Positions 1,420 to 32,157 of a stretch of DNA of 64,000 nt are shown one piece after another. Position numbers and translations under genes: made by a program. Location of the stretch: the sequence record NC_061450.1; one strand, 5' to 3'. Within the stretch, counting starts at the first letter, position 1; each line of letters opens with the position of its first letter. A model generated the notes under the pieces. That model made no database searches, had not been told where the DNA came from, and saw only the letters and a program-made list of their open reading frames with translations.

Positions 1420-2214
1420 ATGACTACTCGTCCGTATGAATCACCGTATGGTGTAATAGAGTCAGCAAACTTGGTCCCTCGTTGGACCAAGTCTGTTGTT
1501 CACGGCTCCGTTCGACGTGTCGAAGAATGGGAGCTGGAGGTGCTGACTAATAGTGTACGCGAAGTTTCTTTCGTAAACGACATTCATGCAATCCATCAAA
1601 ATCAAGTGGTAGAAGCAGATGACGATGACCAGCTTGACCTCGACGCAGAACTCACCGCGCAGGAAAAAACTGCCAGCCGACTTCTTATCAAGCCTAAGCT
1701 CCACAAAATCCGTAATCGTAACAGAAAAGATGAGACTGGTCCAGAAAACGTCTTCGATGTAAGCGACAAGACAATTGATCGCGAAGTCCGACGCATCGAT
1801 ACCAAGTCTCGCAAGATCAGACGCCTGCTGCTGGGTAACGTTGTAAGCACGATGATCGGCTACGACATTGCCGCTGGTGAGACTGAGGCTATTGCGCGGG
1901 ACTGCCTGCAGACTCCTGTTGAAATTGACGATGAGTTGGTTCCATACATGGAGCGCATTGGTCTGGCTAATATCCTGGGTAGCTTTCTCGCCGACTCAGA
2001 ACACATTCCAGAACAGGTAAAATCTGATGTGTTGAAAGACCTGTTGATTAAATGGTTTGACGACATGCGTAATGAGGACAAGGCGAAAAACAAGTCAGGC
2101 TACCTGCGTAGATTGAAGCAAGAATTTGATGGCCTTATTGCACAGCAATCCGGTCCTAGTCTAGGAACAACCCGAGGTTTCTCCGAGTTAAGAAAACGCG
2201 AACAGAATGGCTAA
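1420..2214 (+). CDS. hypothetical protein overlapping the terminase start (small-terminase candidate by position only)
   Basis: 264-aa ORF; stop overlaps terminase ATG by 8 nt; no recognised motif; start uncertain. Confidence 0.6.
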   Translation: MTTRPYESPYGVIESANLVPRWTKSVVHGSVRRVEEWELEVLTNSVREVSFVNDIHAIHQNQVVEADDDDQLDLDAELTAQEKTASRLLIKPKLHKIRNRNRKDETGPENVFDVSDKTIDREVRRIDTKSRKIRRLLLGNVVSTMIGYDIAAGETEAIARDCLQTPVEIDDELVPYMERIGLANILGSFLADSEHIPEQVKSDVLKDLLIKWFDDMRNEDKAKNKSGYLRRLKQEFDGLIAQQSGPSLGTTRGFSELRKREQNG

Positions 2215-5014
2215 ACCGAAGAAGGGACCGGCATTCACCATTAACCCAAAGCGTATCATGGCTTTCGATGCGCTGTTGGGTGATGATGTAGATGCGGTAG
2301 ATACTCAGGTAGATTTCTTATCTGAGAATAGTGGAAGCTCTATAGCGTTTCTTGAAAAAGGCGAAGTCAACATTGTTGATATCGTTGACAAGGCACTGGA
2401 AGACCGTGCGCTTGTACCACGAGATCTCAAGTTCGATGACAGCGCCATGCCTCGTCCTGCAAACTTCCTTGAGTGGACAACAAGTCCTAACTTCCTCAAG
2501 GCAGACCCATACCTAGAACAGGCCCTGATTGGTATCAGACTGTTTGGCGAATGGTGTCCACGCTGCTCTAACAAAGAGTGGATAAACATAGAAAGTCACG
2601 AGCCGCAAGAAGGCATTGCTGGAATCCGCAAGAATTTAACCTTGTTGGAACACGGCAAGTGCCCGAAGTGCGGCGTTCGTCGTTCTGAGCTCCTGAAAAA
2701 GGACGAATTACACTTCTACAACGAGCTGGCCGTAAACGCCGGACAGCGTTGTGTGAGTGGTACCACGCCTGTTGTTACCAATGGTGGCATCAAGCCAATC
2801 AGTCACATGTTTATCGGGCACACAACACCCGGCTTCCATCAGGCACGTTTAGGCTGTAGTGCGCACAATGGAACGCGTGTTAGTCGTGTCAAACAGATTT
2901 ATATCAGCAAAGAAGAACAGACCAAGTGTGTTGTGCTTGAGAACGGTATGTTCATCGAGGCAACTCATGATCATCCTATCCGCACTGAGTCCGGCTTTAA
3001 GCACGTAGGCAACATCAAGCCTGGAGCAATGGTCCAGCTCGTTCTAGGTACTAACTCTTGGGGCAAGCTGACCAAGCCTACAAGCATCTTTGATGCAGGC
3101 AAGAGTACCAGACAGGCAGCTCTGGAGTATCTCAAGAATCACTCCATAAGCAGCGAAGGCACACAGTACGTTTACGCCGCTGATTCGGAGCACGCCCAGA
3201 TGGCTTGGTCCATCCTGTGCAATGCTGGCTACAGTCCTGTGGTGCATCGTAGTGAGGACGAGTTCTTTGTTGTGTTTGACCTCACGCTTGAATGCAAACC
3301 ACGATCGATTCATCTTGCTGTTACTGATGTGTTCGATACAGAGCCTCAGATAACGTATGACCTTTGTATGGACGGCATGCCTCAGTTTGTCAGTGCTGGC
3401 ATGTTGAGCCACAACAGTGGTAAGTCCGTTGTAACAGCAATGATCTCAACGTACCTTACGCAAAAGATTCTGATGAGTCAGAGTCCTACAGGCATCTTGG
3501 GTATCGATCCCACGACAATGCTGCACGGTACGTTCGTCGCACTGACGCAAAAGCAGGCCAGTGATACACTGTGGACTCCATACTTCCAGTATATATCACA
3601 GAGCCCGTGGTTCCAGAGCTATCACGAAATCATCCGTCGCCATGAACGGCGCTATGGCATAGAGGTCATGAAGATTCGTGACACGTTTGTGATGTACGGA
3701 CACAGGAACCTTGTTGTTTATCCAGCAGGTCCTGATGGTCGTATCCTGCGTGGTCGTACTCGTATCTTTGCGGCAATCGATGAGGTGGCATACTTCGACA
3801 ACGATGCAGACTCGAAAAAGGTTAAGGCCAGTGCCAACATGGTGTATGGAGCACTTGACCGAAGTCTTGCAACGGTACGAAGCGCCCAACGTAAACAGAT
3901 TGCTGCTGGCTATGACGATGCGTTTACAGGCTACTTCTTCAATATCTCCAGCCCGGTACACGCACGCGACAAGATCAACGAACTTCTGCGTCTCAGCTAT
4001 GGCTCCAAGACTATCTTGGGCATTCATGCACCCACGTGGAAGATGAACCCAACAATGCCACGCGACAGTGAATTCCTTGTGGAAGCATTTCGTCGTGACC
4101 CTGTCGGAGCAGCGCGTGATTACGGAGCAGAGGCACCACTGTCTGCCAACCCGTTTATCACTCAGCCCATCTTTATCGAACGCGCCATTCGCGAGAAAGG
4201 ACGCAACAAGGTCAAGTACACCCACCAGCTTGTCAAGTACAGGGACGGCAAGCAGCGTTATGGCTCGATACTCAAAGGTGCTACAACGCAGCAACCATCC
4301 ATCATGGCAATCGATGCGGGCTACAGCAACAACAGCTTTGCAATGGTAATCGGTACTCGAACTGATGACGGTGTTATTCACGTTGATGTGCTGGTGGAGA
4401 TTATGCCAAAGCCAGGCATACCTCTCAACTACAGCAAGATATTCGATGAACTGTTGGTTCCACTAAGCAAGCTGCGCAACGTTCGCGTGCTGCTTGCTGA
4501 CCAATGGCAGTCGATTAAACTGTTGCAGGATGCCATGGCTAAAGCTGATATGGACGCCGCTGATCAGTACAGTCTCAAGTACAAAGATATGTGGGGTGTT
4601 AAAACCTTGCTTGAGTCGGACCCAAGTCGTGTCACACTGCCTCGTCTTGAATACGCAGAAACCATTCAGGACACATTGAAGTACGACGGTGATGAATATC
4701 CGTGGTGCTTTGAAGGCAAGCCAACAGAGCACTTGATGATGCAGCTCCAGACCGTTCAGGACACAGGGCACAGCGTTGTCAAGAACACAGGCGCAACAGA
4801 TGACTTGTGGCGTGCTATGGCACTGATGGTCAGAGGCTTTGAGTGTGGCGATTACGATGACTGGCTGAGAAAACGTGAGGAGAAAATCTCTAACCGTGAT
4901 CCGGCTCGTCTTGGTGTTCGTGCAGGTCGTGTCAACATGGGTCAGACTATGACCAAGAATCTTGGCTCGAAAGCGCTGGGAAGTCTGCGTCAGAGGAACA
5001 TTGCACGCAAGTAG
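2207..5014 (+). CDS. terminase large subunit, intein-containing
   Basis: After intein removal Walker A reads AGQR|SGKS; GRILRGRT, Walker B FAAIDEVAY, ISSP, RNase H-like IMAIDAG and TDDLW; two N-terminal CPxC motifs. Confidence 0.9.
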   Translation: MAKPKKGPAFTINPKRIMAFDALLGDDVDAVDTQVDFLSENSGSSIAFLEKGEVNIVDIVDKALEDRALVPRDLKFDDSAMPRPANFLEWTTSPNFLKADPYLEQALIGIRLFGEWCPRCSNKEWINIESHEPQEGIAGIRKNLTLLEHGKCPKCGVRRSELLKKDELHFYNELAVNAGQRCVSGTTPVVTNGGIKPISHMFIGHTTPGFHQARLGCSAHNGTRVSRVKQIYISKEEQTKCVVLENGMFIEATHDHPIRTESGFKHVGNIKPGAMVQLVLGTNSWGKLTKPTSIFDAGKSTRQAALEYLKNHSISSEGTQYVYAADSEHAQMAWSILCNAGYSPVVHRSEDEFFVVFDLTLECKPRSIHLAVTDVFDTEPQITYDLCMDGMPQFVSAGMLSHNSGKSVVTAMISTYLTQKILMSQSPTGILGIDPTTMLHGTFVALTQKQASDTLWTPYFQYISQSPWFQSYHEIIRRHERRYGIEVMKIRDTFVMYGHRNLVVYPAGPDGRILRGRTRIFAAIDEVAYFDNDADSKKVKASANMVYGALDRSLATVRSAQRKQIAAGYDDAFTGYFFNISSPVHARDKINELLRLSYGSKTILGIHAPTWKMNPTMPRDSEFLVEAFRRDPVGAARDYGAEAPLSANPFITQPIFIERAIREKGRNKVKYTHQLVKYRDGKQRYGSILKGATTQQPSIMAIDAGYSNNSFAMVIGTRTDDGVIHVDVLVEIMPKPGIPLNYSKIFDELLVPLSKLRNVRVLLADQWQSIKLLQDAMAKADMDAADQYSLKYKDMWGVKTLLESDPSRVTLPRLEYAETIQDTLKYDGDEYPWCFEGKPTEHLMMQLQTVQDTGHSVVKNTGATDDLWRAMALMVRGFECGDYDDWLRKREEKISNRDPARLGVRAGRVNMGQTMTKNLGSKALGSLRQRNIARK
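2750..3415 (+). mobile_element. intein (222 aa) in terminase Walker A, degenerate endonuclease
   Basis: Begins CVSGTTPV, block B EATHDHPI, ends MLSHN followed by Ser; too short for an intact LAGLIDADG domain. Confidence 0.9.
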
Positions 5015-12042: not shown

Positions 12043-12807
12043 ATGAGCAACATTGATAAAACAATGCCACAAGGCAAATGGGAATTTGATGAAAACGTTG
12101 CCTGCGTGTTTGATAACATGCTGCAAAACAGTATTCCAAGCTATGACCGTATGCGTGAGCTTACCCACTTCTTGGGTCGTCGCTTTGTAACTCCAGGCAC
12201 TGCCATAGTTGACCTGGGTGCATCGTTGGGTCGTGCTATCGAGCCGTTTGCTCGTGAGTTTGGTGCGCCTCGTGGTGAGCAGAACGGTGACCATGTTCGT
12301 TCGTGTGGTAACTACTACAGCCTGTATGAAGTAGCTCCTGCCATGCGTGAGCGTCTTGAAAAGAACCCATTGCTCCAAGCAGTGCAGGCCGAACTCAGTG
12401 ACTATAGCCTGACGGATGTTGACTCGTTCAAACTCAACGATGGAAAAATCGATTGTTCGTTGATTCTCAGCGTGTTAACTCTCCAGTTCACGCCCATCGA
12501 ACACCGCCAACACATCCTCGAGACCGTGTATGACTCGCTACAGCCTGGTGGCGCATTCATCTTGGTAGAGAAAGTGTTGGGCGATGACAACTTCCTTGAT
12601 CGTATGCTGGTCGATACCTATTATGGCATGAAAGGCGGCAACGGTTACTCGGCTGAATCTATCGCTGCTAAGCGCAAGTCACTTGAAGGCGTGCTGGTTC
12701 CAGTTAAAGCCGCATGGAATGAAGAACTGTTGCGCAAGACAGGCTTCAAACGTGTTGAGTGTTTCTATCGTGACCTGAATTTCGCAGGCTGGATTGCAGT
12801 CAAATAA
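12043..12807 (+). CDS. cmoA: carboxy-S-adenosylmethionine synthase (CmoA-like)
   Basis: Collinear with E. coli CmoA: WEFDENVACVFDNM, SIPSY, VDLGASLG, LTLQF, LQPGGAFILVEK, NGYS..I..KRxxLE with the conserved Arg, ECFY..LNF. Confidence 0.9.
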   Translation: MSNIDKTMPQGKWEFDENVACVFDNMLQNSIPSYDRMRELTHFLGRRFVTPGTAIVDLGASLGRAIEPFAREFGAPRGEQNGDHVRSCGNYYSLYEVAPAMRERLEKNPLLQAVQAELSDYSLTDVDSFKLNDGKIDCSLILSVLTLQFTPIEHRQHILETVYDSLQPGGAFILVEKVLGDDNFLDRMLVDTYYGMKGGNGYSAESIAAKRKSLEGVLVPVKAAWNEELLRKTGFKRVECFYRDLNFAGWIAVK

Positions 12808-12854: not shown

Positions 12855-13736
12855 ATGGCTAACCGTCAACAGCGCTGTGCTCAAATGATACGCGAGTCAC
12901 TAATCAACGAAATCAAAAAGGCTCGCAGCAAACGTCCTTATGTATTCCTCAGCGGTGGAGTTGATTCTAACTGCATCCTGTTTGCAGCACTTGAAGCAGG
13001 CACGCGTCCGATCACGCTTAGCTTCCACATGGAAGGCGTTAACAGCCGTGACTTCCGAGCAGCACAACGCACGGCACAACACTTTGGTCTGGAGTTTATT
13101 GAGGTTGTGTTGCCATCAGATCCAGACCGTCTGAAAAGCGACGTGCTGACAATGGCTGAACGCTATAAGTGCGTGCAGAAAAACGAGTTTGAATGTAGCT
13201 GGCCAATGCTGTACAGCTTCTTCCACGTTAAACGCCATGCAGAAGCCGCAGGTATCAAACGTCCTGTGACGTTCACGGGCCAAGGTGCTGACTTGATGTA
13301 CCTCAGCAGCAAGAAAGCCAGCATTCACTACAAAGATCGTCCTGATGTTTGGCGCAAAGAAGGTCGCGCTAACCCACACCGCACTCAGGGTCGTATCTTA
13401 CCTCTGATGGCTCAAGATGCTGGTGTGCGCAACATCAAGCCTTGGGACAGCGAAGAAATCCTTGATGCGTTTCTTGGCACCAGCTGGGAAGACGTAAACA
13501 AGCCACGCCAGAAAGAACCTTCGCGCATGGCGTTTGAAGATTACTTCCAGCAGATTCGCGTATACAACCATCAAAACTTCCAGCTGGGTGATACCAAGAT
13601 TGCAGAGCACTTTGAGCAACTACTGGATGACCCTAAGTTCAACCCAGATAATCGTTACAAGTCTGTGGTGGGCGTATACAACGAACTCGCACGCCGCTTT
13701 GGCAACGAGATTCCTCAACAAGAAGAAGACGAATAA
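12855..13736 (+). CDS. asparagine-synthetase-like ATP-dependent amide ligase lacking glutaminase domain (CmoY-like candidate)
   Basis: PP-loop FLSGGVDS, DFRAAQRTAQHFG, TFTGQGAD (cf. AsnB SGEGAD); 293 aa with no N-terminal Ntn domain. Confidence 0.8.
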   Translation: MANRQQRCAQMIRESLINEIKKARSKRPYVFLSGGVDSNCILFAALEAGTRPITLSFHMEGVNSRDFRAAQRTAQHFGLEFIEVVLPSDPDRLKSDVLTMAERYKCVQKNEFECSWPMLYSFFHVKRHAEAAGIKRPVTFTGQGADLMYLSSKKASIHYKDRPDVWRKEGRANPHRTQGRILPLMAQDAGVRNIKPWDSEEILDAFLGTSWEDVNKPRQKEPSRMAFEDYFQQIRVYNHQNFQLGDTKIAEHFEQLLDDPKFNPDNRYKSVVGVYNELARRFGNEIPQQEEDE

Positions 13737-15844: not shown

Positions 15845-16300
15845 ATGAGTCCCTTAGCAATTTTAAAGGCACAGGTTAAACGTTCGTTGGTTGGAGAAGC
15901 CAACTACGATCCCGAAGTACGCGAACTGTTTGATTGGCGATTCGTTGCCAACGTTGGCGGAAAGCAGTATCTGGTTGGCAAGACTGGCGCTAACACCGTG
16001 TACTATCAAACGCCAGACATGGACCAACCCGCTCCGTGTTACCCTTCTGATATTGAAGGTATTATCGATAGTTGGAGCAAGGCCAAATACCTCAGCTTCT
16101 TTATCTGCCATAAAAAGTTTGATAACATCAAGCTGGACAACATCAAGACAATTGAAGATGCTCTCCAGAAGGTTCCAAAGACCTTCCACGACAAGACCTT
16201 CATTGCTGGTGTAACACCAAAAGGCAAGCGTCACAAACTGTATGTGTTGCAGGCGGGCTTGCGTGGCAATACCTGGGTACCGTTGAAGGAGCAGGATTAA
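15845..16300 (+). CDS. hypothetical protein
   Basis: 151-aa ORF. Confidence 0.6.
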   Translation: MSPLAILKAQVKRSLVGEANYDPEVRELFDWRFVANVGGKQYLVGKTGANTVYYQTPDMDQPAPCYPSDIEGIIDSWSKAKYLSFFICHKKFDNIKLDNIKTIEDALQKVPKTFHDKTFIAGVTPKGKRHKLYVLQAGLRGNTWVPLKEQD

Positions 16301-16715: not shown

Positions 16716-17552
16716 ATGCAGTATATCAGCCCTATTCGATACCAGGGATCGAAGCGTAGCCTTATTCCTGTTATCAAGCAACTTGCACCACAAGACTGCA
16801 CCAACATGATTGACGCCTTTGGTGGTTCGGCAACTGTGGTACTCAACATGGATCATCGACGCCGCATGTACTGCGAGTCATATCAGCCTGTGTTTGAGAT
16901 TGTTGATACTCTGGCTAGTGTTGAACCCCATCGAACAGTCAACAAAGTAAAGCGATTGGTTAAGCGTTGGAAACTGGATAAGCACAGCCCTGACAATTTC
17001 TTTAAATTTCGTGACCACGCCAACAGCAGACGTGACCCATTGATGTTTTATATCTTGCATCGCCATGCACATAGCAACCTGTTGCGTTTCAATCAGGACG
17101 GTGAGTACAACGTACCGTTCGGTAAACGTGGCATAGCGGACAATATGGAAGATGTAGAACGTGAAATCTATACCTTCTTTTATAACATGCAGGACGTGCA
17201 ACGAGTCAACGCACGTTATGGTCAGGTGTTGTTGGACAGCAGGTCTAAACTCAACCACAAGACATTCATTTATTTTGATCCTCCTTATCTGGCCAGTGGT
17301 GCCAACTGCTACGATAGTTGGTCCGAGAAATACGAGCACCAGTTGTTGCGTAATCTTGAACGATTGACCGTGATGGGCGTCAAGTGGATGTTAAGCAACG
17401 TCACCCAGCACAGGCATTTTCGCAACGATGTGCTGATCAAGTGGTTAAAGAAGAATAAAATTCGTGTTGTGTATCCGAACAAGACCTATGCATTGGCTAA
17501 CCTGCACGGTGATAGCCACAGCACTGTAGAAATCATTGCAATGAACTATTGA
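16716..17552 (+). CDS. dam: Dam-family (D12 class) N6-adenine DNA methyltransferase
   Basis: RYQGSK, IDAFGGSATV, FNVPFG-like YNVPFG, FIYFDPPY, WMLSN; start moved from 16641 to 16716 because 16641 lies in the terminator. Confidence 0.88.
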   Translation: MQYISPIRYQGSKRSLIPVIKQLAPQDCTNMIDAFGGSATVVLNMDHRRRMYCESYQPVFEIVDTLASVEPHRTVNKVKRLVKRWKLDKHSPDNFFKFRDHANSRRDPLMFYILHRHAHSNLLRFNQDGEYNVPFGKRGIADNMEDVEREIYTFFYNMQDVQRVNARYGQVLLDSRSKLNHKTFIYFDPPYLASGANCYDSWSEKYEHQLLRNLERLTVMGVKWMLSNVTQHRHFRNDVLIKWLKKNKIRVVYPNKTYALANLHGDSHSTVEIIAMNY

Positions 17553-20042: not shown

Positions 20043-20319
20043 ACAGCTCTTGAAAAAGCTACAGATGGTTGTGAGTTGCCTGGTCAGCCAGATTGAAGCT
20101 CTGGGCATAATGATTGATCACAAAACAGGTGAACTCAATCACGGTGCTTTGGGTCTGACGATAGGCACGCATAGCGTTGAGTATTGCGTTATGCAGATCG
20201 ATGTGCTGCTAGAGATTCGTCAACGTTTCCAGCGTGAACTCGCCGAACTCAACCAAAACTACGAAAGCCACATTAATCTTTGGGCAGATGGTCTACTTAA
20301 CTCTATGGACGTAACATGA
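20032..20319 (+). CDS. hypothetical protein
   Basis: Probable GTG start at 20032. Confidence 0.5.
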   Translation: MENEQLLKKLQMVVSCLVSQIEALGIMIDHKTGELNHGALGLTIGTHSVEYCVMQIDVLLEIRQRFQRELAELNQNYESHINLWADGLLNSMDVT

Positions 20320-20801
20320 ACGAAAAGAAAGCAGTAGCAATCATGGCGGCCCTGTTTGGTCTGGCCACAATCTCCAACAGCCGTCGGCGTAGCTGTGCAG
20401 CCGCAGTAGTGCGTCTTGTTGAAGGCGTGCCTGTGATGATTGCCACAGGCGTTAACGGTACTTCTCCTGGACACGATAATGTGTGTGAGCCAGAAGACCT
20501 CAGCAGTACCTACCCGCACGTCATTCATGCAGAAGATAACTGTCTGCGTCGTTATACGGCGCTGGGTAATATCAGGCCTGACTTGGACATGCTGTTTGTC
20601 ACAGACAGTCCCTGTGCCGCGTGCTTTGACAAGATTATCGCCTCAAATATTCGTCAGGTGTACTATGCGCGTAGTTACCGCATTCAAGACCACTTGCCAC
20701 TGGCTGAACGTCATGGGCTGGAGTTCGTTGAAGTGGACTTGCAGCAGGTGCGCATGAATCTGATTGAAGCCCACCAGCGCATCGATAAAGTGATCAGCTA
20801 A
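20316..20801 (+). CDS. dCMP deaminase (cytidine/deoxycytidylate deaminase family)
   Basis: TGVNG, IHAE, TDSPCAAC zinc motifs. Confidence 0.88.
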   Translation: MNEKKAVAIMAALFGLATISNSRRRSCAAAVVRLVEGVPVMIATGVNGTSPGHDNVCEPEDLSSTYPHVIHAEDNCLRRYTALGNIRPDLDMLFVTDSPCAACFDKIIASNIRQVYYARSYRIQDHLPLAERHGLEFVEVDLQQVRMNLIEAHQRIDKVIS

Positions 20802-25680: not shown

Positions 25681-26336
25681 TGTTTGATAATTGGGATTGG
25701 TCAATTTTCTGGCCTGTATGCTTTTTCGTTTTAGCTATTGCCGGTTACTTCGGTCTGTTGGGATGGTTCGGTGGACGTATGCGTCGCAAACATCAATCAG
25801 AGAGCACTACCAACATCGGTGCCAAGATTCGCACAACGTACAATCTTTGGTACACAAACTCTGTACGTGCAGGTCAAGTATATCGTCACCACAGTGGACG
25901 CGAATACTTGATCGTTAGTATCTTCAATGGCATGTGTGACGATAAAGTCAAATGGCCATTGACTGTTGTATACTGCAATGTCCAAATGACGGCATGGTAT
26001 GCACGCCCACTTTGGCAGTTCCTCGAAGGCTGTCAGCTTAATCGAGAGATCGACAACGATGACTCGATACCACTGATGGACCTTATGGCAATGGCACGCT
26101 TTGATGGCAAAGTCGAAGCAGAGCTACCACAGGCTCAAAGTGTTTGGACACAAGGCGAACCTAGTCAGCCTCACTTGAGAAGGCCAAACGTTGTTGTTAC
26201 ACAGGTCTATAACAAGAATCTGTCTCAACCTATTGTTTCGTATTATGCCATAGGTCGTGAGCACGAGGCACTAGCCTTGCCTCTTTTTGTGTTCCTCAAG
26301 AAATACAGTCCCGTAGCCCAGGAGAAAGCGGCGTGA
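25680..26336 (+). CDS. membrane-anchored DUF1653-like protein
   Basis: TM helix then GQVYRHHSGREY...VVY...WYARP...F. Confidence 0.55.
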   Translation: MFDNWDWSIFWPVCFFVLAIAGYFGLLGWFGGRMRRKHQSESTTNIGAKIRTTYNLWYTNSVRAGQVYRHHSGREYLIVSIFNGMCDDKVKWPLTVVYCNVQMTAWYARPLWQFLEGCQLNREIDNDDSIPLMDLMAMARFDGKVEAELPQAQSVWTQGEPSQPHLRRPNVVVTQVYNKNLSQPIVSYYAIGREHEALALPLFVFLKKYSPVAQEKAA

Positions 26337-27421
26337 GCAAGACATTCGATTTAAAGAACCCACAGCACTTTGCAATGTATCTCATGGAAAGTGTTGATGG
26401 CCAGTACATGCAACTGGTTGAAGCAATTCAGAACTCAGGCACGCTTGAGTTTGACAAGAACCGCACAGAAGATACGTGGCAGACCTTGATTGGTTGTGCC
26501 ATGCAGTTGCACAACACAGCACTGGCGTTCCCTGCGCTGCTCAGCAAGCAAGTAGCATGGAAGCCTGCCGTTGATGAGACGTGCTGGTTCGCTCGTGGTG
26601 AAACCAACATCCGTACTCTCAACAGCAAGATCTGGAATGAGTGGGCAGATGCTGATGGCGAGTGTGGTCCAATCTACGGTGAAATGTGGCGTCGTTGGCC
26701 AGATGTTAAAGTATTGCAACTTCCTAATGCGAACGATGAAAGTCCAGCAGCAGAACGTATCGAGAATGAAGCACAGCGTATGCGCAATGCTGGCTATCGT
26801 GAAACACAACTGCCTGATGGTCGCATGTTGTTTGAAGGTGAGATTGACCAACTGTTGGATGCATTGAATGCCGTGTGTGCGCACTCACGTAGTCGTCGCA
26901 TTAAAGTAGCCACGTATAACCCAGGCTACATTCACATGCAGGCCCTGCCTCCGTGTCACACTAACTTTGAGTTCAACGTGACTCAGGCAACCAACTACGA
27001 ACGCATGGTTGCAGCGGCTGCTGGTCTGCCTGTATATGACAATACTCTGCACCTAACAGCGACCATGAGATCCCAGGACACCCTTTTGGGTAGACCTTTT
27101 AACATCATTGGCTATGCTACGCTGTTGCACTTGTTCGCCAAGTATGCCAAGTTGAACATCGGTGGCTTTACGCTGAACACGACCAACACCCACGTGTATT
27201 CTCATCATTGGGATGCCTTGCGCCAACAGCAGGCACAGTACCAGGAGCTGTTGGAAGAGGTTCGCACTACTGGTCATCCTATGACTTATCCTCAGATGAT
27301 TATCAGTGATGCGATTCACGACATGCAGCCAAAAGAGTTGCTGGACAATCTCAGTCCAGACATGTTTAATCTCGTAGGCTATCAACCCAAGCCTGCCGTT
27401 AAAGGACGCGTAACCAAATGA
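26333..27421 (+). CDS. thyA: thymidylate synthase
   Basis: IWNEW, GPIYGEMWR, SRR, LPPCH, RSQD, GRPFN, HVY. Confidence 0.93.
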   Translation: MSKTFDLKNPQHFAMYLMESVDGQYMQLVEAIQNSGTLEFDKNRTEDTWQTLIGCAMQLHNTALAFPALLSKQVAWKPAVDETCWFARGETNIRTLNSKIWNEWADADGECGPIYGEMWRRWPDVKVLQLPNANDESPAAERIENEAQRMRNAGYRETQLPDGRMLFEGEIDQLLDALNAVCAHSRSRRIKVATYNPGYIHMQALPPCHTNFEFNVTQATNYERMVAAAAGLPVYDNTLHLTATMRSQDTLLGRPFNIIGYATLLHLFAKYAKLNIGGFTLNTTNTHVYSHHWDALRQQQAQYQELLEEVRTTGHPMTYPQMIISDAIHDMQPKELLDNLSPDMFNLVGYQPKPAVKGRVTK

Positions 27422-29349: not shown

Positions 29350-30042
29350 ATGGCACTGAGTAAGGTCAAAAAAGTAAAAGCTAAAAGCAAAGATCGTGGC
29401 GAACTGGCGGTGTCGTTAAAAGATCTGAAACACGTTAAGCAGTTGCGCAGCGCTGGCTACAACCCACGTATGATTACAGACCGTCGTCTGGCAGACCTTG
29501 AAAAGTCTATCGCATCGTTTGGTGACCTGAGTGGCGTTGTGTTTAACAACAGCGTGAAAAGTGGTGTGCTTGTATCAGGCCACCAGCGTCTTAGCTCTAT
29601 CAAGGGTTGGAAGACGCGTGTTCAGGTTGATGCAGCAACTGATGACCACGGCACTGTGGGTGTAGGCTACATCTTTGCTGAAAGCCCTAAAGGCAAGCAG
29701 GTGCAGATTCCACTGCGTGTGGTAAACTGGTCAGATCGTCGTGCTGAGTATGCAGCAAACATTGCAGCCAACGCACACGGCGGTGAGTTCGATAACAAAA
29801 AGCTGGCTCAGTTGGTTGAGAAGTTGGACATGACCAAGATCCCAGCAGAGATTGTTGGTCTGGACCCTTTGATGCTGCGTGGTCTTAAACAGCGTCTCGC
29901 CAAACAGGGTGAAGATCTTGGCAAGCCGACGCGTACTAACGGCACACAAAACGGCGCCAGTGGTCAGTTCAATGAGGCAACGGTTGATGACATTGAATCA
30001 GATACCGTACACAAATGCCCGCGCTGTAACTTTAAGTTCTAA
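29350..30042 (+). CDS. ParB/Srx-like N-terminal domain protein with C-terminal zinc ribbon
   Basis: YNPRMI, LEKSIASFG, VLVSGHQRL, C-terminal HKCPRCNFKF. Confidence 0.8.
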   Translation: MALSKVKKVKAKSKDRGELAVSLKDLKHVKQLRSAGYNPRMITDRRLADLEKSIASFGDLSGVVFNNSVKSGVLVSGHQRLSSIKGWKTRVQVDAATDDHGTVGVGYIFAESPKGKQVQIPLRVVNWSDRRAEYAANIAANAHGGEFDNKKLAQLVEKLDMTKIPAEIVGLDPLMLRGLKQRLAKQGEDLGKPTRTNGTQNGASGQFNEATVDDIESDTVHKCPRCNFKF

Positions 30043-30051
30043 GGAACAGAT

Positions 30052-32157
30052 ATGCTGATCAAACCACCAAAGATGAAAGAGATTAATGACCTGCCGAAGT
30101 TGTGGTCAGGCATGAGTTTCTTTGCAGGCTGCGGTGGTTCCAGCACGGGTCACAAAATGAGTGGTGTCGATATTCTCGTTTCGAATGAGTTTATCGACAT
30201 TGCTCGTGAGACTTACGCTGCGAACCATCCGACGACCAAAGTTCTTGGGCAGGACATTCGTCGTCTTAGTCCAGATAAAATTCTGAAATACTGCGGGCTG
30301 GCAAAAGGTGAGTTGGACTTGCTTGATGGCAGCCCTCCGTGTTTCCTGCGCGATACCCTGATTCATACTCAGCACGGTATGCGCTACATTGATTCGATTG
30401 AAACAGGCGACATGGTAATGACCCACGAAGGTCGTTATCGTCCTGTTGTTCAACCCATGCGCCGCCCATACAGCGGTCCTCTGCATCGTATTCAGTCCAC
30501 AATCGGACAGAACCACGCAACGCCTGAGCATCCTTTCTATGTCAGACGTTTGGTAAACGGTGTATTGAGTGAAGCACAGTGGGTTGACGCTCGTGAGGTT
30601 CGTGCTGGCGACAAAGTTGCTACGCCTATTGCCACGCCGCGTTGTAGCTATGAGCCTGACATTGCTGCCTTGCGCAAGTGGGGAGAAATCCCAGAGTTCT
30701 GGTGGCTGTGCGGTCATTGGGTGTCTAACGGTTTCATCGAAGCTGTTGGCGGCTATGAGGGCATTCGCTTTATCACGCCAAGCAACGGACGTGTTAACCA
30801 GCTCATGGAACAGGCTCTTGAAACTCTGGGCTTCAACACAATTCAGGTTGCCAAGCAAAACACCAGATACATCGAACGCTTTATGCTGGACGATGACCTG
30901 TGTCAGTTCCTCAAGTTGTTCCTGACTGATAACGAAATGGCGCGTCAGATTCAAGGCTGTGTGTTCCACCTTGATATGTACCTCAAGCGTGAGTTTATCT
31001 ACGGCTTTATGTCGCGTTGCTCAGCCACAAGCTACGGCAAAGCGCTGGTGGTTCAAACTCGCACTGAACGCTTTATGACAGGCATGAAATACCTTATTGC
31101 CTCTGCGTTCGGCAGTCCCCTGTTCGACTTGAGTCCCAACGTTACAACGGAAGAGATTCCAGAGAACTGCTTTACGTTCCGCCGCGATCATCCGTTCTAT
31201 CCAAAAGTTCGTTACACTGCGGTGTTCTATCTGGATGACACTCATCGCGGTTATATCGATGATGAGTCTGCCCACGTGTGGGTTGACGTGTTGGCCAACG
31301 AAGTGTCCGAAGTTGATACAGAGGTGTTTAACTTCTCAGTTGATACGGACGAGACGTACATTGCCAACAACACTGTGGTGCACAACTGCAAAGGCTTTTC
31401 TACTGCAGGTGTGAAGGAAGATGGCTGGGGCAAAGAGGTCAAGTACAGCGACAACGTTTATCAGCAGGTTGATGACCTGTTTGATGAGTTCTGCCGTATG
31501 CTGGGTGGCATGATGCCCAAGGTGTTCACAGCGGAGAATGTTAGCGGTCTGACTAAAGGCATGTCGAAAGGGTACTTCCTGGAAATCATGGCAACGTTTG
31601 ATGCGCTTGGCTATCATGTTCGTGCACCAATGTTGAACAGTAGCTGGCTGGGTGTTCCGCAATCGCGTGAGCGTATCATCTTTATGGGTGTGCGCAAAGA
31701 CATTGCCAAGAAACTCAAACTGCCGGCAAACAGCACCTGTGTGCCAAGTGTTATTCCGCACAAAACACAGACCATGCTGGCAGATGCACTGCCTCACATT
31801 GCAGCCTACAAGTCCACGCAACAGGATTTGATCAAGTACAAGCCTGCAATGAACGGACCCATGCCGACCATCACAGCGGCTGATGCTATTGCCTATGAAA
31901 CAGCGCGGTTCTCATCTGCTGGGTTTATTGAACTGCTTGATGGTACCCGACGCAAGCTGACCATCAATGAACTGCTGGTGGTTAGTGGCATGCCAAGTGA
32001 TTACAAGCTGCTTGGCAAGTTTGAAGAACAATGGGAACGTCTTGGTCGTGTGTGCGTGCCAGCAATGACGCACAACGCATCAAAGGTTTTGATTGAGCAC
32101 ATCTTGATCCCTTACTGCAATGCGATGAAGAAGCGGCCTGGAGAGATTTTCCGATAG
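30052..32157 (+). CDS. C5-cytosine DNA methyltransferase homologue, predicted carboxymethyltransferase (CmoX-like), intein-containing
   Basis: Motifs FAGCGG, GSPP|C, ENV, PQSRER, RKLTINE; motif X reads ERLGRVCVP instead of Q.GNSV.P; spliced length 352 aa. Confidence 0.85.
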   Translation: MLIKPPKMKEINDLPKLWSGMSFFAGCGGSSTGHKMSGVDILVSNEFIDIARETYAANHPTTKVLGQDIRRLSPDKILKYCGLAKGELDLLDGSPPCFLRDTLIHTQHGMRYIDSIETGDMVMTHEGRYRPVVQPMRRPYSGPLHRIQSTIGQNHATPEHPFYVRRLVNGVLSEAQWVDAREVRAGDKVATPIATPRCSYEPDIAALRKWGEIPEFWWLCGHWVSNGFIEAVGGYEGIRFITPSNGRVNQLMEQALETLGFNTIQVAKQNTRYIERFMLDDDLCQFLKLFLTDNEMARQIQGCVFHLDMYLKREFIYGFMSRCSATSYGKALVVQTRTERFMTGMKYLIASAFGSPLFDLSPNVTTEEIPENCFTFRRDHPFYPKVRYTAVFYLDDTHRGYIDDESAHVWVDVLANEVSEVDTEVFNFSVDTDETYIANNTVVHNCKGFSTAGVKEDGWGKEVKYSDNVYQQVDDLFDEFCRMLGGMMPKVFTAENVSGLTKGMSKGYFLEIMATFDALGYHVRAPMLNSSWLGVPQSRERIIFMGVRKDIAKKLKLPANSTCVPSVIPHKTQTMLADALPHIAAYKSTQQDLIKYKPAMNGPMPTITAADAIAYETARFSSAGFIELLDGTRRKLTINELLVVSGMPSDYKLLGKFEEQWERLGRVCVPAMTHNASKVLIEHILIPYCNAMKKRPGEIFR
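30340..31386 (+). mobile_element. intein (349 aa) with LAGLIDADG-type endonuclease remnant
   Basis: Begins CFLRDT, block B ATPEHPFY, WLCGHWVSNG and FIYGFMSRCS remnants, ends VVHN before Cys. Confidence 0.92.

Follow-up and report, generated by a model that had tools for sequence, protein, structure and literature searches.

The closest described counterpart of the gene considered here is SpCmoX of Synechococcus phage S-B43 (PDB 8YF3; Yang et al., Nat Commun 2025), a DNA cytosine C5-carboxymethyltransferase that forms 5-carboxymethylcytosine from carboxy-S-adenosylmethionine (carboxy-SAM or Cx-SAM) and that accepts this cofactor while refusing S-adenosylmethionine (SAM) (PMC12783734). In its 1.9 A crystal structure, Arg350 contacts the carboxymethyl group/carboxylate of Cx-SAM. 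This residue stands where M.HhaI has Asn304 and parallels the engineered N374K substitution in M.MpeI, and the R350N mutant is dead (PMC12783734 and its reference 21). The activities of two partner enzymes have also been demonstrated: the phage CmoA is the source of the cofactor, and SpCmoY, a ligase resembling Asn synthetase, couples glycine to the new carboxyl group (PMC12783734). The same study lists 5,615 candidate CmoX sequences that combine an SPPC motif with the Arg, often with cmoA and genes for a ligase and a ParB-domain protein in the vicinity. The subject of this report is a cmoX-like gene, interrupted by an intein, in Erwinia phage pEa_SNUABM_5, a jumbo phage of Erwinia amylovora with a genome of 267 kb; bases 1-64000 of this genome, a 64,000-nucleotide stretch, are referred to below as the window.

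The initial annotation of the window predicted that the encoded C5-methyltransferase homologue uses carboxy-SAM, on the grounds that motif X has Arg in place of the usual Asn. The prediction is supported by analogy with SpCmoX, a homologue in which the same mechanism has been proven (PMC12783734). The Arg codon, CGT at 32047-32049, can be read directly off the sequence as codon 666 (30052 + 1995 = 32047), and residue 666 of the precursor becomes residue 317 when the 349-residue intein is excised in silico, leaving a spliced protein of 352 residues; codon and numbering agree with those given in the initial annotation. When this spliced sequence was used as a query, the best match among solved structures was SpCmoX (8yf3, E 1.8e-58), with far weaker matches to M.HaeIII (E 1.4e-17) and M.HhaI (about 5e-10). 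The two CmoX proteins are 36% identical over their full length (E 2e-67), and a profile search of the PDB with the family returned 8yf3 at E 4e-154. Query residues 284-329 pair with residues 317-362 of the 8yf3 chain without gaps, which places R317 on R350. The other residues named for SpCmoX are preserved as well, with F25, E47, F48, D69 and C98 corresponding to F24, E46, F47, D68 and C97 here, and R317 is invariant in a five-sequence family alignment (A1).

The comparison with canonical methyltransferases that was drawn in the initial annotation also holds. The single-sequence alignment to M.HhaI stops exactly at query residue 317, opposite residue 304 of the chain, and when the five-sequence family profile is aligned end-to-end in the PDB search, the family string 'erlGRvvpP' lies over 'kqfGNsvvi' of M.HhaI and 'kmiGNavpv' of M.HaeIII. 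The HMMER stretches to M.MpeI (4dkj), from both phmmer and the profile, stop before motif X, and the equivalence to N374 rests on M.HhaI N304 together with the published comparison (PMC12783734). The resemblance to the engineered M.MpeI N374K is that a basic residue stands in for Asn at the same motif X position, in a scaffold that thereby uses carboxy-SAM; the difference is that a Lys was engineered into a CpG methyltransferase in that case, whereas here a natural Arg is fixed in a large phage family. M.HhaI and M.HaeIII share the fold family (PF00145) and the ten-motif architecture, but have G-N-[SA]-V in motif X where this protein has G-R-V-C, and they match it at E values of 1e-10 to 1e-17, versus 1e-58 for SpCmoX.

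The remaining motifs are intact, as had been claimed: motif I (FFAGCGG), motif IV (GSPP|C-KGFS, via splicing), motif VI (ENV), motif VIII (QSRER) and motif IX (RKLTINEL..GMPSDY). Residues 21-320 of the spliced protein match PF00145 with E 5e-41, over the gathering score. The string GSPPC occupies spliced residues 93-97, and is also found literally in the unspliced precursor because the first residue of the intein is itself a Cys. The cytosine-contacting residues E146 (in ENV) and R190/R192 (in QxRxR) are invariant in A1. In the variable region between motifs VIII and IX (about 31690..31960, and also about 31990..32010), the CmoX proteins of the jumbo phages and of Pseudomonas phage PaBG are tens of residues shorter than SpCmoX and most of the relatives in IMG/VR. 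From its sequence, this short variable region may point to a DNA target other than the GC motif of SpCmoX.

A source of Cx-SAM is present in the same genome. The CmoA homologue in the window matches the structure of E. coli CmoA (4gek) with E 1e-30 over residues 11-254, which amounts to full-length homology, and is 30% identical to the proven SpCmoA (E 7e-29). The Arg of the E. coli CmoA string 'SQKRSMLE', which we take to be R199, a binder of the Cx-SAM carboxylate, is conserved as 'AAKRKSLE'. The adjacent ligase gene encodes the PP-loop domain of Asn synthetase only (PF00733, E 2e-10, over the cut-off), without a glutaminase domain. It aligns over its full length with SpCmoY (34% identity over 264 residues, E 1e-38) and is 42% identical to the PaBG 'asparagine synthase' (E 1e-62). 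Upstream of cmoX, the ParB-like protein matches phrog_620 (E 1e-29) and is 43% identical (E 5e-51) to the ParB-like nuclease that precedes cmoX in PaBG; it has no match in Pfam, even at E <= 5. In PaBG the order is ParB-like gene, intein-less cmoX, cmoA, small ORF (open reading frame) and ligase gene, all in one compact cluster. The coordinates of the corresponding features in the window are given in Table 1.

Table 1. The predicted CmoX precursor, its parts, and the candidate partner genes in the window
Feature	Coordinates	Strand	Length (amino acids, aa)	Description
CmoX precursor ORF	30052..32157	+	701 aa	Intact
N-extein of CmoX	30052..30339	+	96 aa	Motif I FFAGCGG; cofactor-binding E46/F47 and D68; C-terminal end GSPP of motif IV
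Intein	30340..31386	+	349 aa	Hint splicing domain and LAGLIDADG-type central domain; directly before the catalytic Cys
C-extein of CmoX	31387..32157	+	256 aa + stop	First residue is the catalytic Cys (spliced C97); motifs VI, VIII, IX and X
Motif X LGRVCVP (translation)	32041..32061	+		R317 is the predicted Cx-SAM carboxylate binder; equivalent to SpCmoX R350 and M.HhaI N304
CmoA homologue	12043..12807	+	254 aa	Predicted carboxy-SAM synthase (SAM + prephenate); annotated 'putative methyltransferase'
CmoY-type ATP-dependent amide ligase	12855..13736	+	293 aa	Annotated 'putative asparagine synthetase'; beside cmoA
ParB-like protein	29350..30042	+	230 aa	10 bp upstream of cmoX
Small protein	15845..16300	+	151 aa	Homologue of PaBG_00179 (E 8e-23); phrog_23597 only, unknown function; no Pfam match

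Homologues of the small protein PaBG_00179 sit between cmoA and the ligase gene both in PaBG (L003 5857-6309) and in one IMG/VR locus (L016, near 4375), and the counterpart in the window may, tentatively, be a further or accessory component of the pathway.

The distribution of the motif X Arg was followed in IMG/VR, where a search with the family alignment yielded the 80 closest loci, all from uncultivated viruses, with 10-kb flanks. The motif X column contains Arg in 73 loci, Asn in six and Leu in one, and the strings without Arg read CGNAVPP or LGNSVPP (Asn) and LGLSVPP (Leu). Six Arg-type loci from jumbo phages were left out of the linkage test, their cmoA lying beyond the 10-kb flank. Of the remaining 67 loci with Arg, 65 have a cmoA homologue in their flanks, versus none of the seven with Asn or Leu (Fisher p = 2e-8). 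The Asn-type loci (L030, L043, L048, L054, L064 and L068) and the Leu-type locus (L076) are close relatives, at about 40% identity, and all are without cmoA in their flanks. A ParB homologue occurs in the flanks of 64 of the 80 loci. The Arg is thus more than a chance substitution, as had been proposed, being invariant in A1, present in the great majority of these relatives, and tracking with cmoA.

In a maximum-likelihood tree, the CmoX of the window groups with that of Yoloswag in a jumbo-phage clade (support 100/100) whose sister is PaBG (97/98). Nested within the Arg-type sequences, those of the Asn type fall into a singleton and two small clades with good support. The nesting of Asn and Leu types, with no cmoA in their flanks, suggests that the chemistry has switched repeatedly between methyl and carboxymethyl transfer. 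Among related phage genomes, genes for a ParB-like protein, a cytosine methyltransferase, an Asn synthase and a CmoA-like protein occur together in AD1 and Y3, and all are absent from the related JA11 (PMC6143709). A radical SAM protein (AD1_267 / Y3_272), whose counterpart would lie outside the window, is likewise listed as shared by AD1 and Y3 and missing in JA11 (table, PMC6143709).

Taken with these comparisons, the ORF very probably codes for a precursor that gives rise to a CmoX-type DNA cytosine C5-carboxymethyltransferase, one that acts in a pathway with splicing, CmoA and a ligase. The use of carboxy-SAM is the more strongly indicated because the window has its own CmoA and CmoY-type ligase, and because Arg and cmoA occur together among the relatives. 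As a first step, the 349-residue intein, whose splice residues are conserved, would excise itself and join GSPP to CKGFS, rebuilding motif IV, with the +1 nucleophile Cys of the intein becoming the catalytic Cys97. By homology to the proven enzymes, CmoA would then make carboxy-SAM from SAM and prephenate. As in SpCmoX, whose structure provides the model, Cys97 would attack C6 of cytosine and the carboxymethyl group of carboxy-SAM would be transferred to C5, giving 5-carboxymethylcytosine in the phage DNA, with Arg317 holding the cofactor carboxylate where ordinary C5-methyltransferases have Asn. Finally, the CmoY-type ligase would adenylate the carboxyl group and couple an amine to it (glycine in S-B43). 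The end product would probably be a 5-carboxymethylcytosine amide, and such a hypermodified base would shield the phage DNA from host nucleases.

The likeness to the S-B43 system extends to SPPC, the motif X Arg, all of the named cofactor and catalytic residues and full-length homology of CmoX, and to the presence in the same genome of a CmoA and a glutaminase-less ligase of the Asn synthetase type. The ParB-domain neighbour is likewise reported for many CmoX contigs (PMC12783734). However, the systems differ in that SpCmoX lacks an intein, whereas the enzyme of pEa_SNUABM_5 is split by one at its catalytic Cys, and in that the host of S-B43 is a cyanobacterium, versus an enterobacterial plant pathogen for pEa_SNUABM_5. 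Several points weigh against the assignment. In S-B43, cmoA and cmoY adjoin cmoX; in pEa_SNUABM_5 they lie 17 kb upstream of it and not adjacent, and the linkage is therefore one of genome and not of operon. Identity to the proven SpCmoX is only 36%, with a much shorter variable target-recognition region. Literature searches on this phage group found no report of modified DNA, nor of a methyltransferase intein. Finally, the CmoA of the window matches TIGR00740 with E 5e-42 and 144.2 bits, under the NCBIfam cut-off of 193.3. The proven SpCmoA (115.6 bits) is also under this cut-off, as is the CmoA of PaBG (130.5 bits); the cut-off therefore excludes true phage CmoA enzymes and does not discriminate here.

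The alternative that survives best, with a chance somewhat short of even, concerns the end product: the enzyme may be a carboxymethyltransferase whose final base is unlike that of S-B43, through coupling of an amine other than glycine or because 5-carboxymethylcytosine remains largely unamidated, and whose target motif is not GC. Such a difference would fit the limited identity (34%) between the ligase and SpCmoY, the far shorter variable region of the jumbo-phage CmoX compared with SpCmoX, and the existence of ligase clusters that differ in pocket residues and presumably in the amine used (PMC12783734). On the other hand, the absence of a glutaminase domain and the full-length alignment to SpCmoY place the ligase nearer to the glycine type than to the glutamine-dependent type of Streptomyces phage TurkishDelight, and a different product would refine the assignment to CmoX without replacing it. 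In TurkishDelight (L008 5191-6591), an Arg-type CmoX is found beside two ParB-like genes, CmoA and a full-length glutamine-amidotransferase Asn synthase. Expression of the ammonia-dependent ligase type, to which that of TurkishDelight belongs, failed in the CmoX study (PMC12783734).

It is quite improbable that the gene encodes an ordinary SAM-dependent 5-methylcytosine methyltransferase that tolerates Arg in motif X, with the homologues of CmoA and Asn synthetase serving, for example, tRNA modification or metabolism. The protein does have every canonical C5-methyltransferase motif and the PF00145 match, all records give it as a cytosine methylase, and cmoA is not adjacent to it in pEa_SNUABM_5. 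Against this, the homologous SpCmoX refuses SAM altogether (PMC12783734), close relatives with Asn are without cmoA where those with Arg have it, and the same genes form one cluster in PaBG. A use of Cx-SAM on tRNA would involve CmoB, and no CmoB-like match was found among the scanned neighbours, a scan that fell short of the whole genome.

If the enzyme is a CmoX, as is favoured here, its intein deserves separate consideration. In precursor numbering its first residue is C97 (CFLRD...) and its last is N445 (...VVHN), with a Cys next to it. Since the splice junction is at the catalytic Cys, the protein cannot work as a transferase before it is spliced. The Hint domain matches PF13403 (35.5 bits, cut-off 28.4) and PF07591 (31.6 bits, cut-off 27.7), and C1, the block B residues T61-x-x-H64, H348-N349 and the +1 Cys, as in class 1 inteins, are invariant in seven homologues, while the intein interior falls to 40% identity. 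The central domain has no match in Pfam. An AlphaFold model of the intein (mean predicted local distance difference test score, pLDDT, of 58, and weak in the second half) was used in a fold search, in which the modelled structure resembled PI-SceI and VMA inteins (E 4e-11) and the LAGLIDADG enzyme I-DmoI (E 2e-4). The putative LAGLIDADG motifs, WWLCGHWVSNG (intein residues ~120-131) and FIYGFMSRCSA (~219-229), both lack the acidic residue, and to judge from these motifs the homing endonuclease is probably inactive.

Homologous inteins are found at the identical site, before the motif IV Cys, in the C5-methyltransferases of Lactobacillus phage Nyseid (L090 1492-3612, E 4e-14) and Pseudomonas phage Lana (L091 1501-4332, E 1.5e-24), and inteins thus recur at this insertion point in the cytosine methyltransferases of phages. 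Both host proteins differ from CmoX in motif X: the Nyseid enzyme has the ordinary Asn ('KQAGNSV'), and that of Lana is an ordinary Asn-type methyltransferase. In the Nyseid intein, both LAGLIDADG counterparts (..YVSDG and ..YLSGDG) retain the acidic residue, and in the Lana intein only the second does, whereas both are degenerate in pEa_SNUABM_5. An intact, full-length, intein-bearing gene (53-78% identity) is found in all of the approximately 50 Erwinia, Dickeya and Yersinia jumbo phages of the group, and the intein is absent from PaBG, S-B43 and the other 74 IMG/VR loci. We infer that the intein is competent for splicing, dead for homing and inherited vertically. Once fixed, an intein usually loses its endonuclease activity but goes on splicing.

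The least credible alternative is that the gene is a disabled relic, with an intein that splices poorly or not at all, no active transferase and an Arg that is a frozen ancestral state, for although the loss of both LAGLIDADG catalytic acids does indicate some decay in the element, the ORF is intact in about 50 phages of several genera, among which the exteins are 76-87% identical, and the invariance of C1, TxxH, HN and C+1 beside so variable an interior is the pattern of selection for splicing. With an active CmoX again assumed, the intein could be a timing switch, given that it splits the PC motif, that its +1 nucleophile is the catalytic Cys, and that it is kept lineage-wide with a dead endonuclease. 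This speculative reading, unlikely as a whole, is that splicing acts as a post-translational switch (for example, dependent on redox state or temperature) that times the onset of DNA carboxymethylation during infection and that, separately, the ligase of this lineage attaches an amine other than glycine to give an undescribed base.

The prediction of carboxy-SAM use from the Arg is already published biology, and the gene joins the known CmoX family described in 2025. The intein, the dispersed arrangement of the genes and the occurrence in jumbo phages of plant pathogens are absent from the CmoX study; no mention of Erwinia/SNUABM, Dickeya, inteins or jumbo phages was found in that paper or its supplements (PMC12783734). 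The carboxymethylcytosine pathway would in this way be extended from a cyanophage to jumbo phages of Erwinia, Dickeya and Yersinia, several of which are under development against fire blight and soft rot. Should amides of 5-carboxymethylcytosine be present in the DNA of these phages, restriction mapping, some sequencing chemistries and predictions of host range must account for the modification. The lineage would also offer a natural test of whether an intein on the catalytic Cys regulates a DNA-modifying enzyme, and CmoX variants with a short target-recognition region may recognise new target sequences, which would be of use for labelling DNA through carboxymethyl groups. More generally, cofactor specificity can be called correctly from a single motif residue read in the raw sequence.

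Other genes in the window include an annotated terminase large subunit of 935 residues (2207..5014, + strand), which matches no Pfam family at E <= 0.01 and in which no Hint domain or intein was detected by Pfam; according to the PaBG paper, related phages have inteins in their terminases. The same region also contains genes for a Dam-family adenine methyltransferase (16716..17552, +), a dCMP-deaminase-like protein (20316..20801, +), and a thymidylate synthase homologue (26333..27421, +) that, at 362 residues, is ~100 residues longer than the profile.

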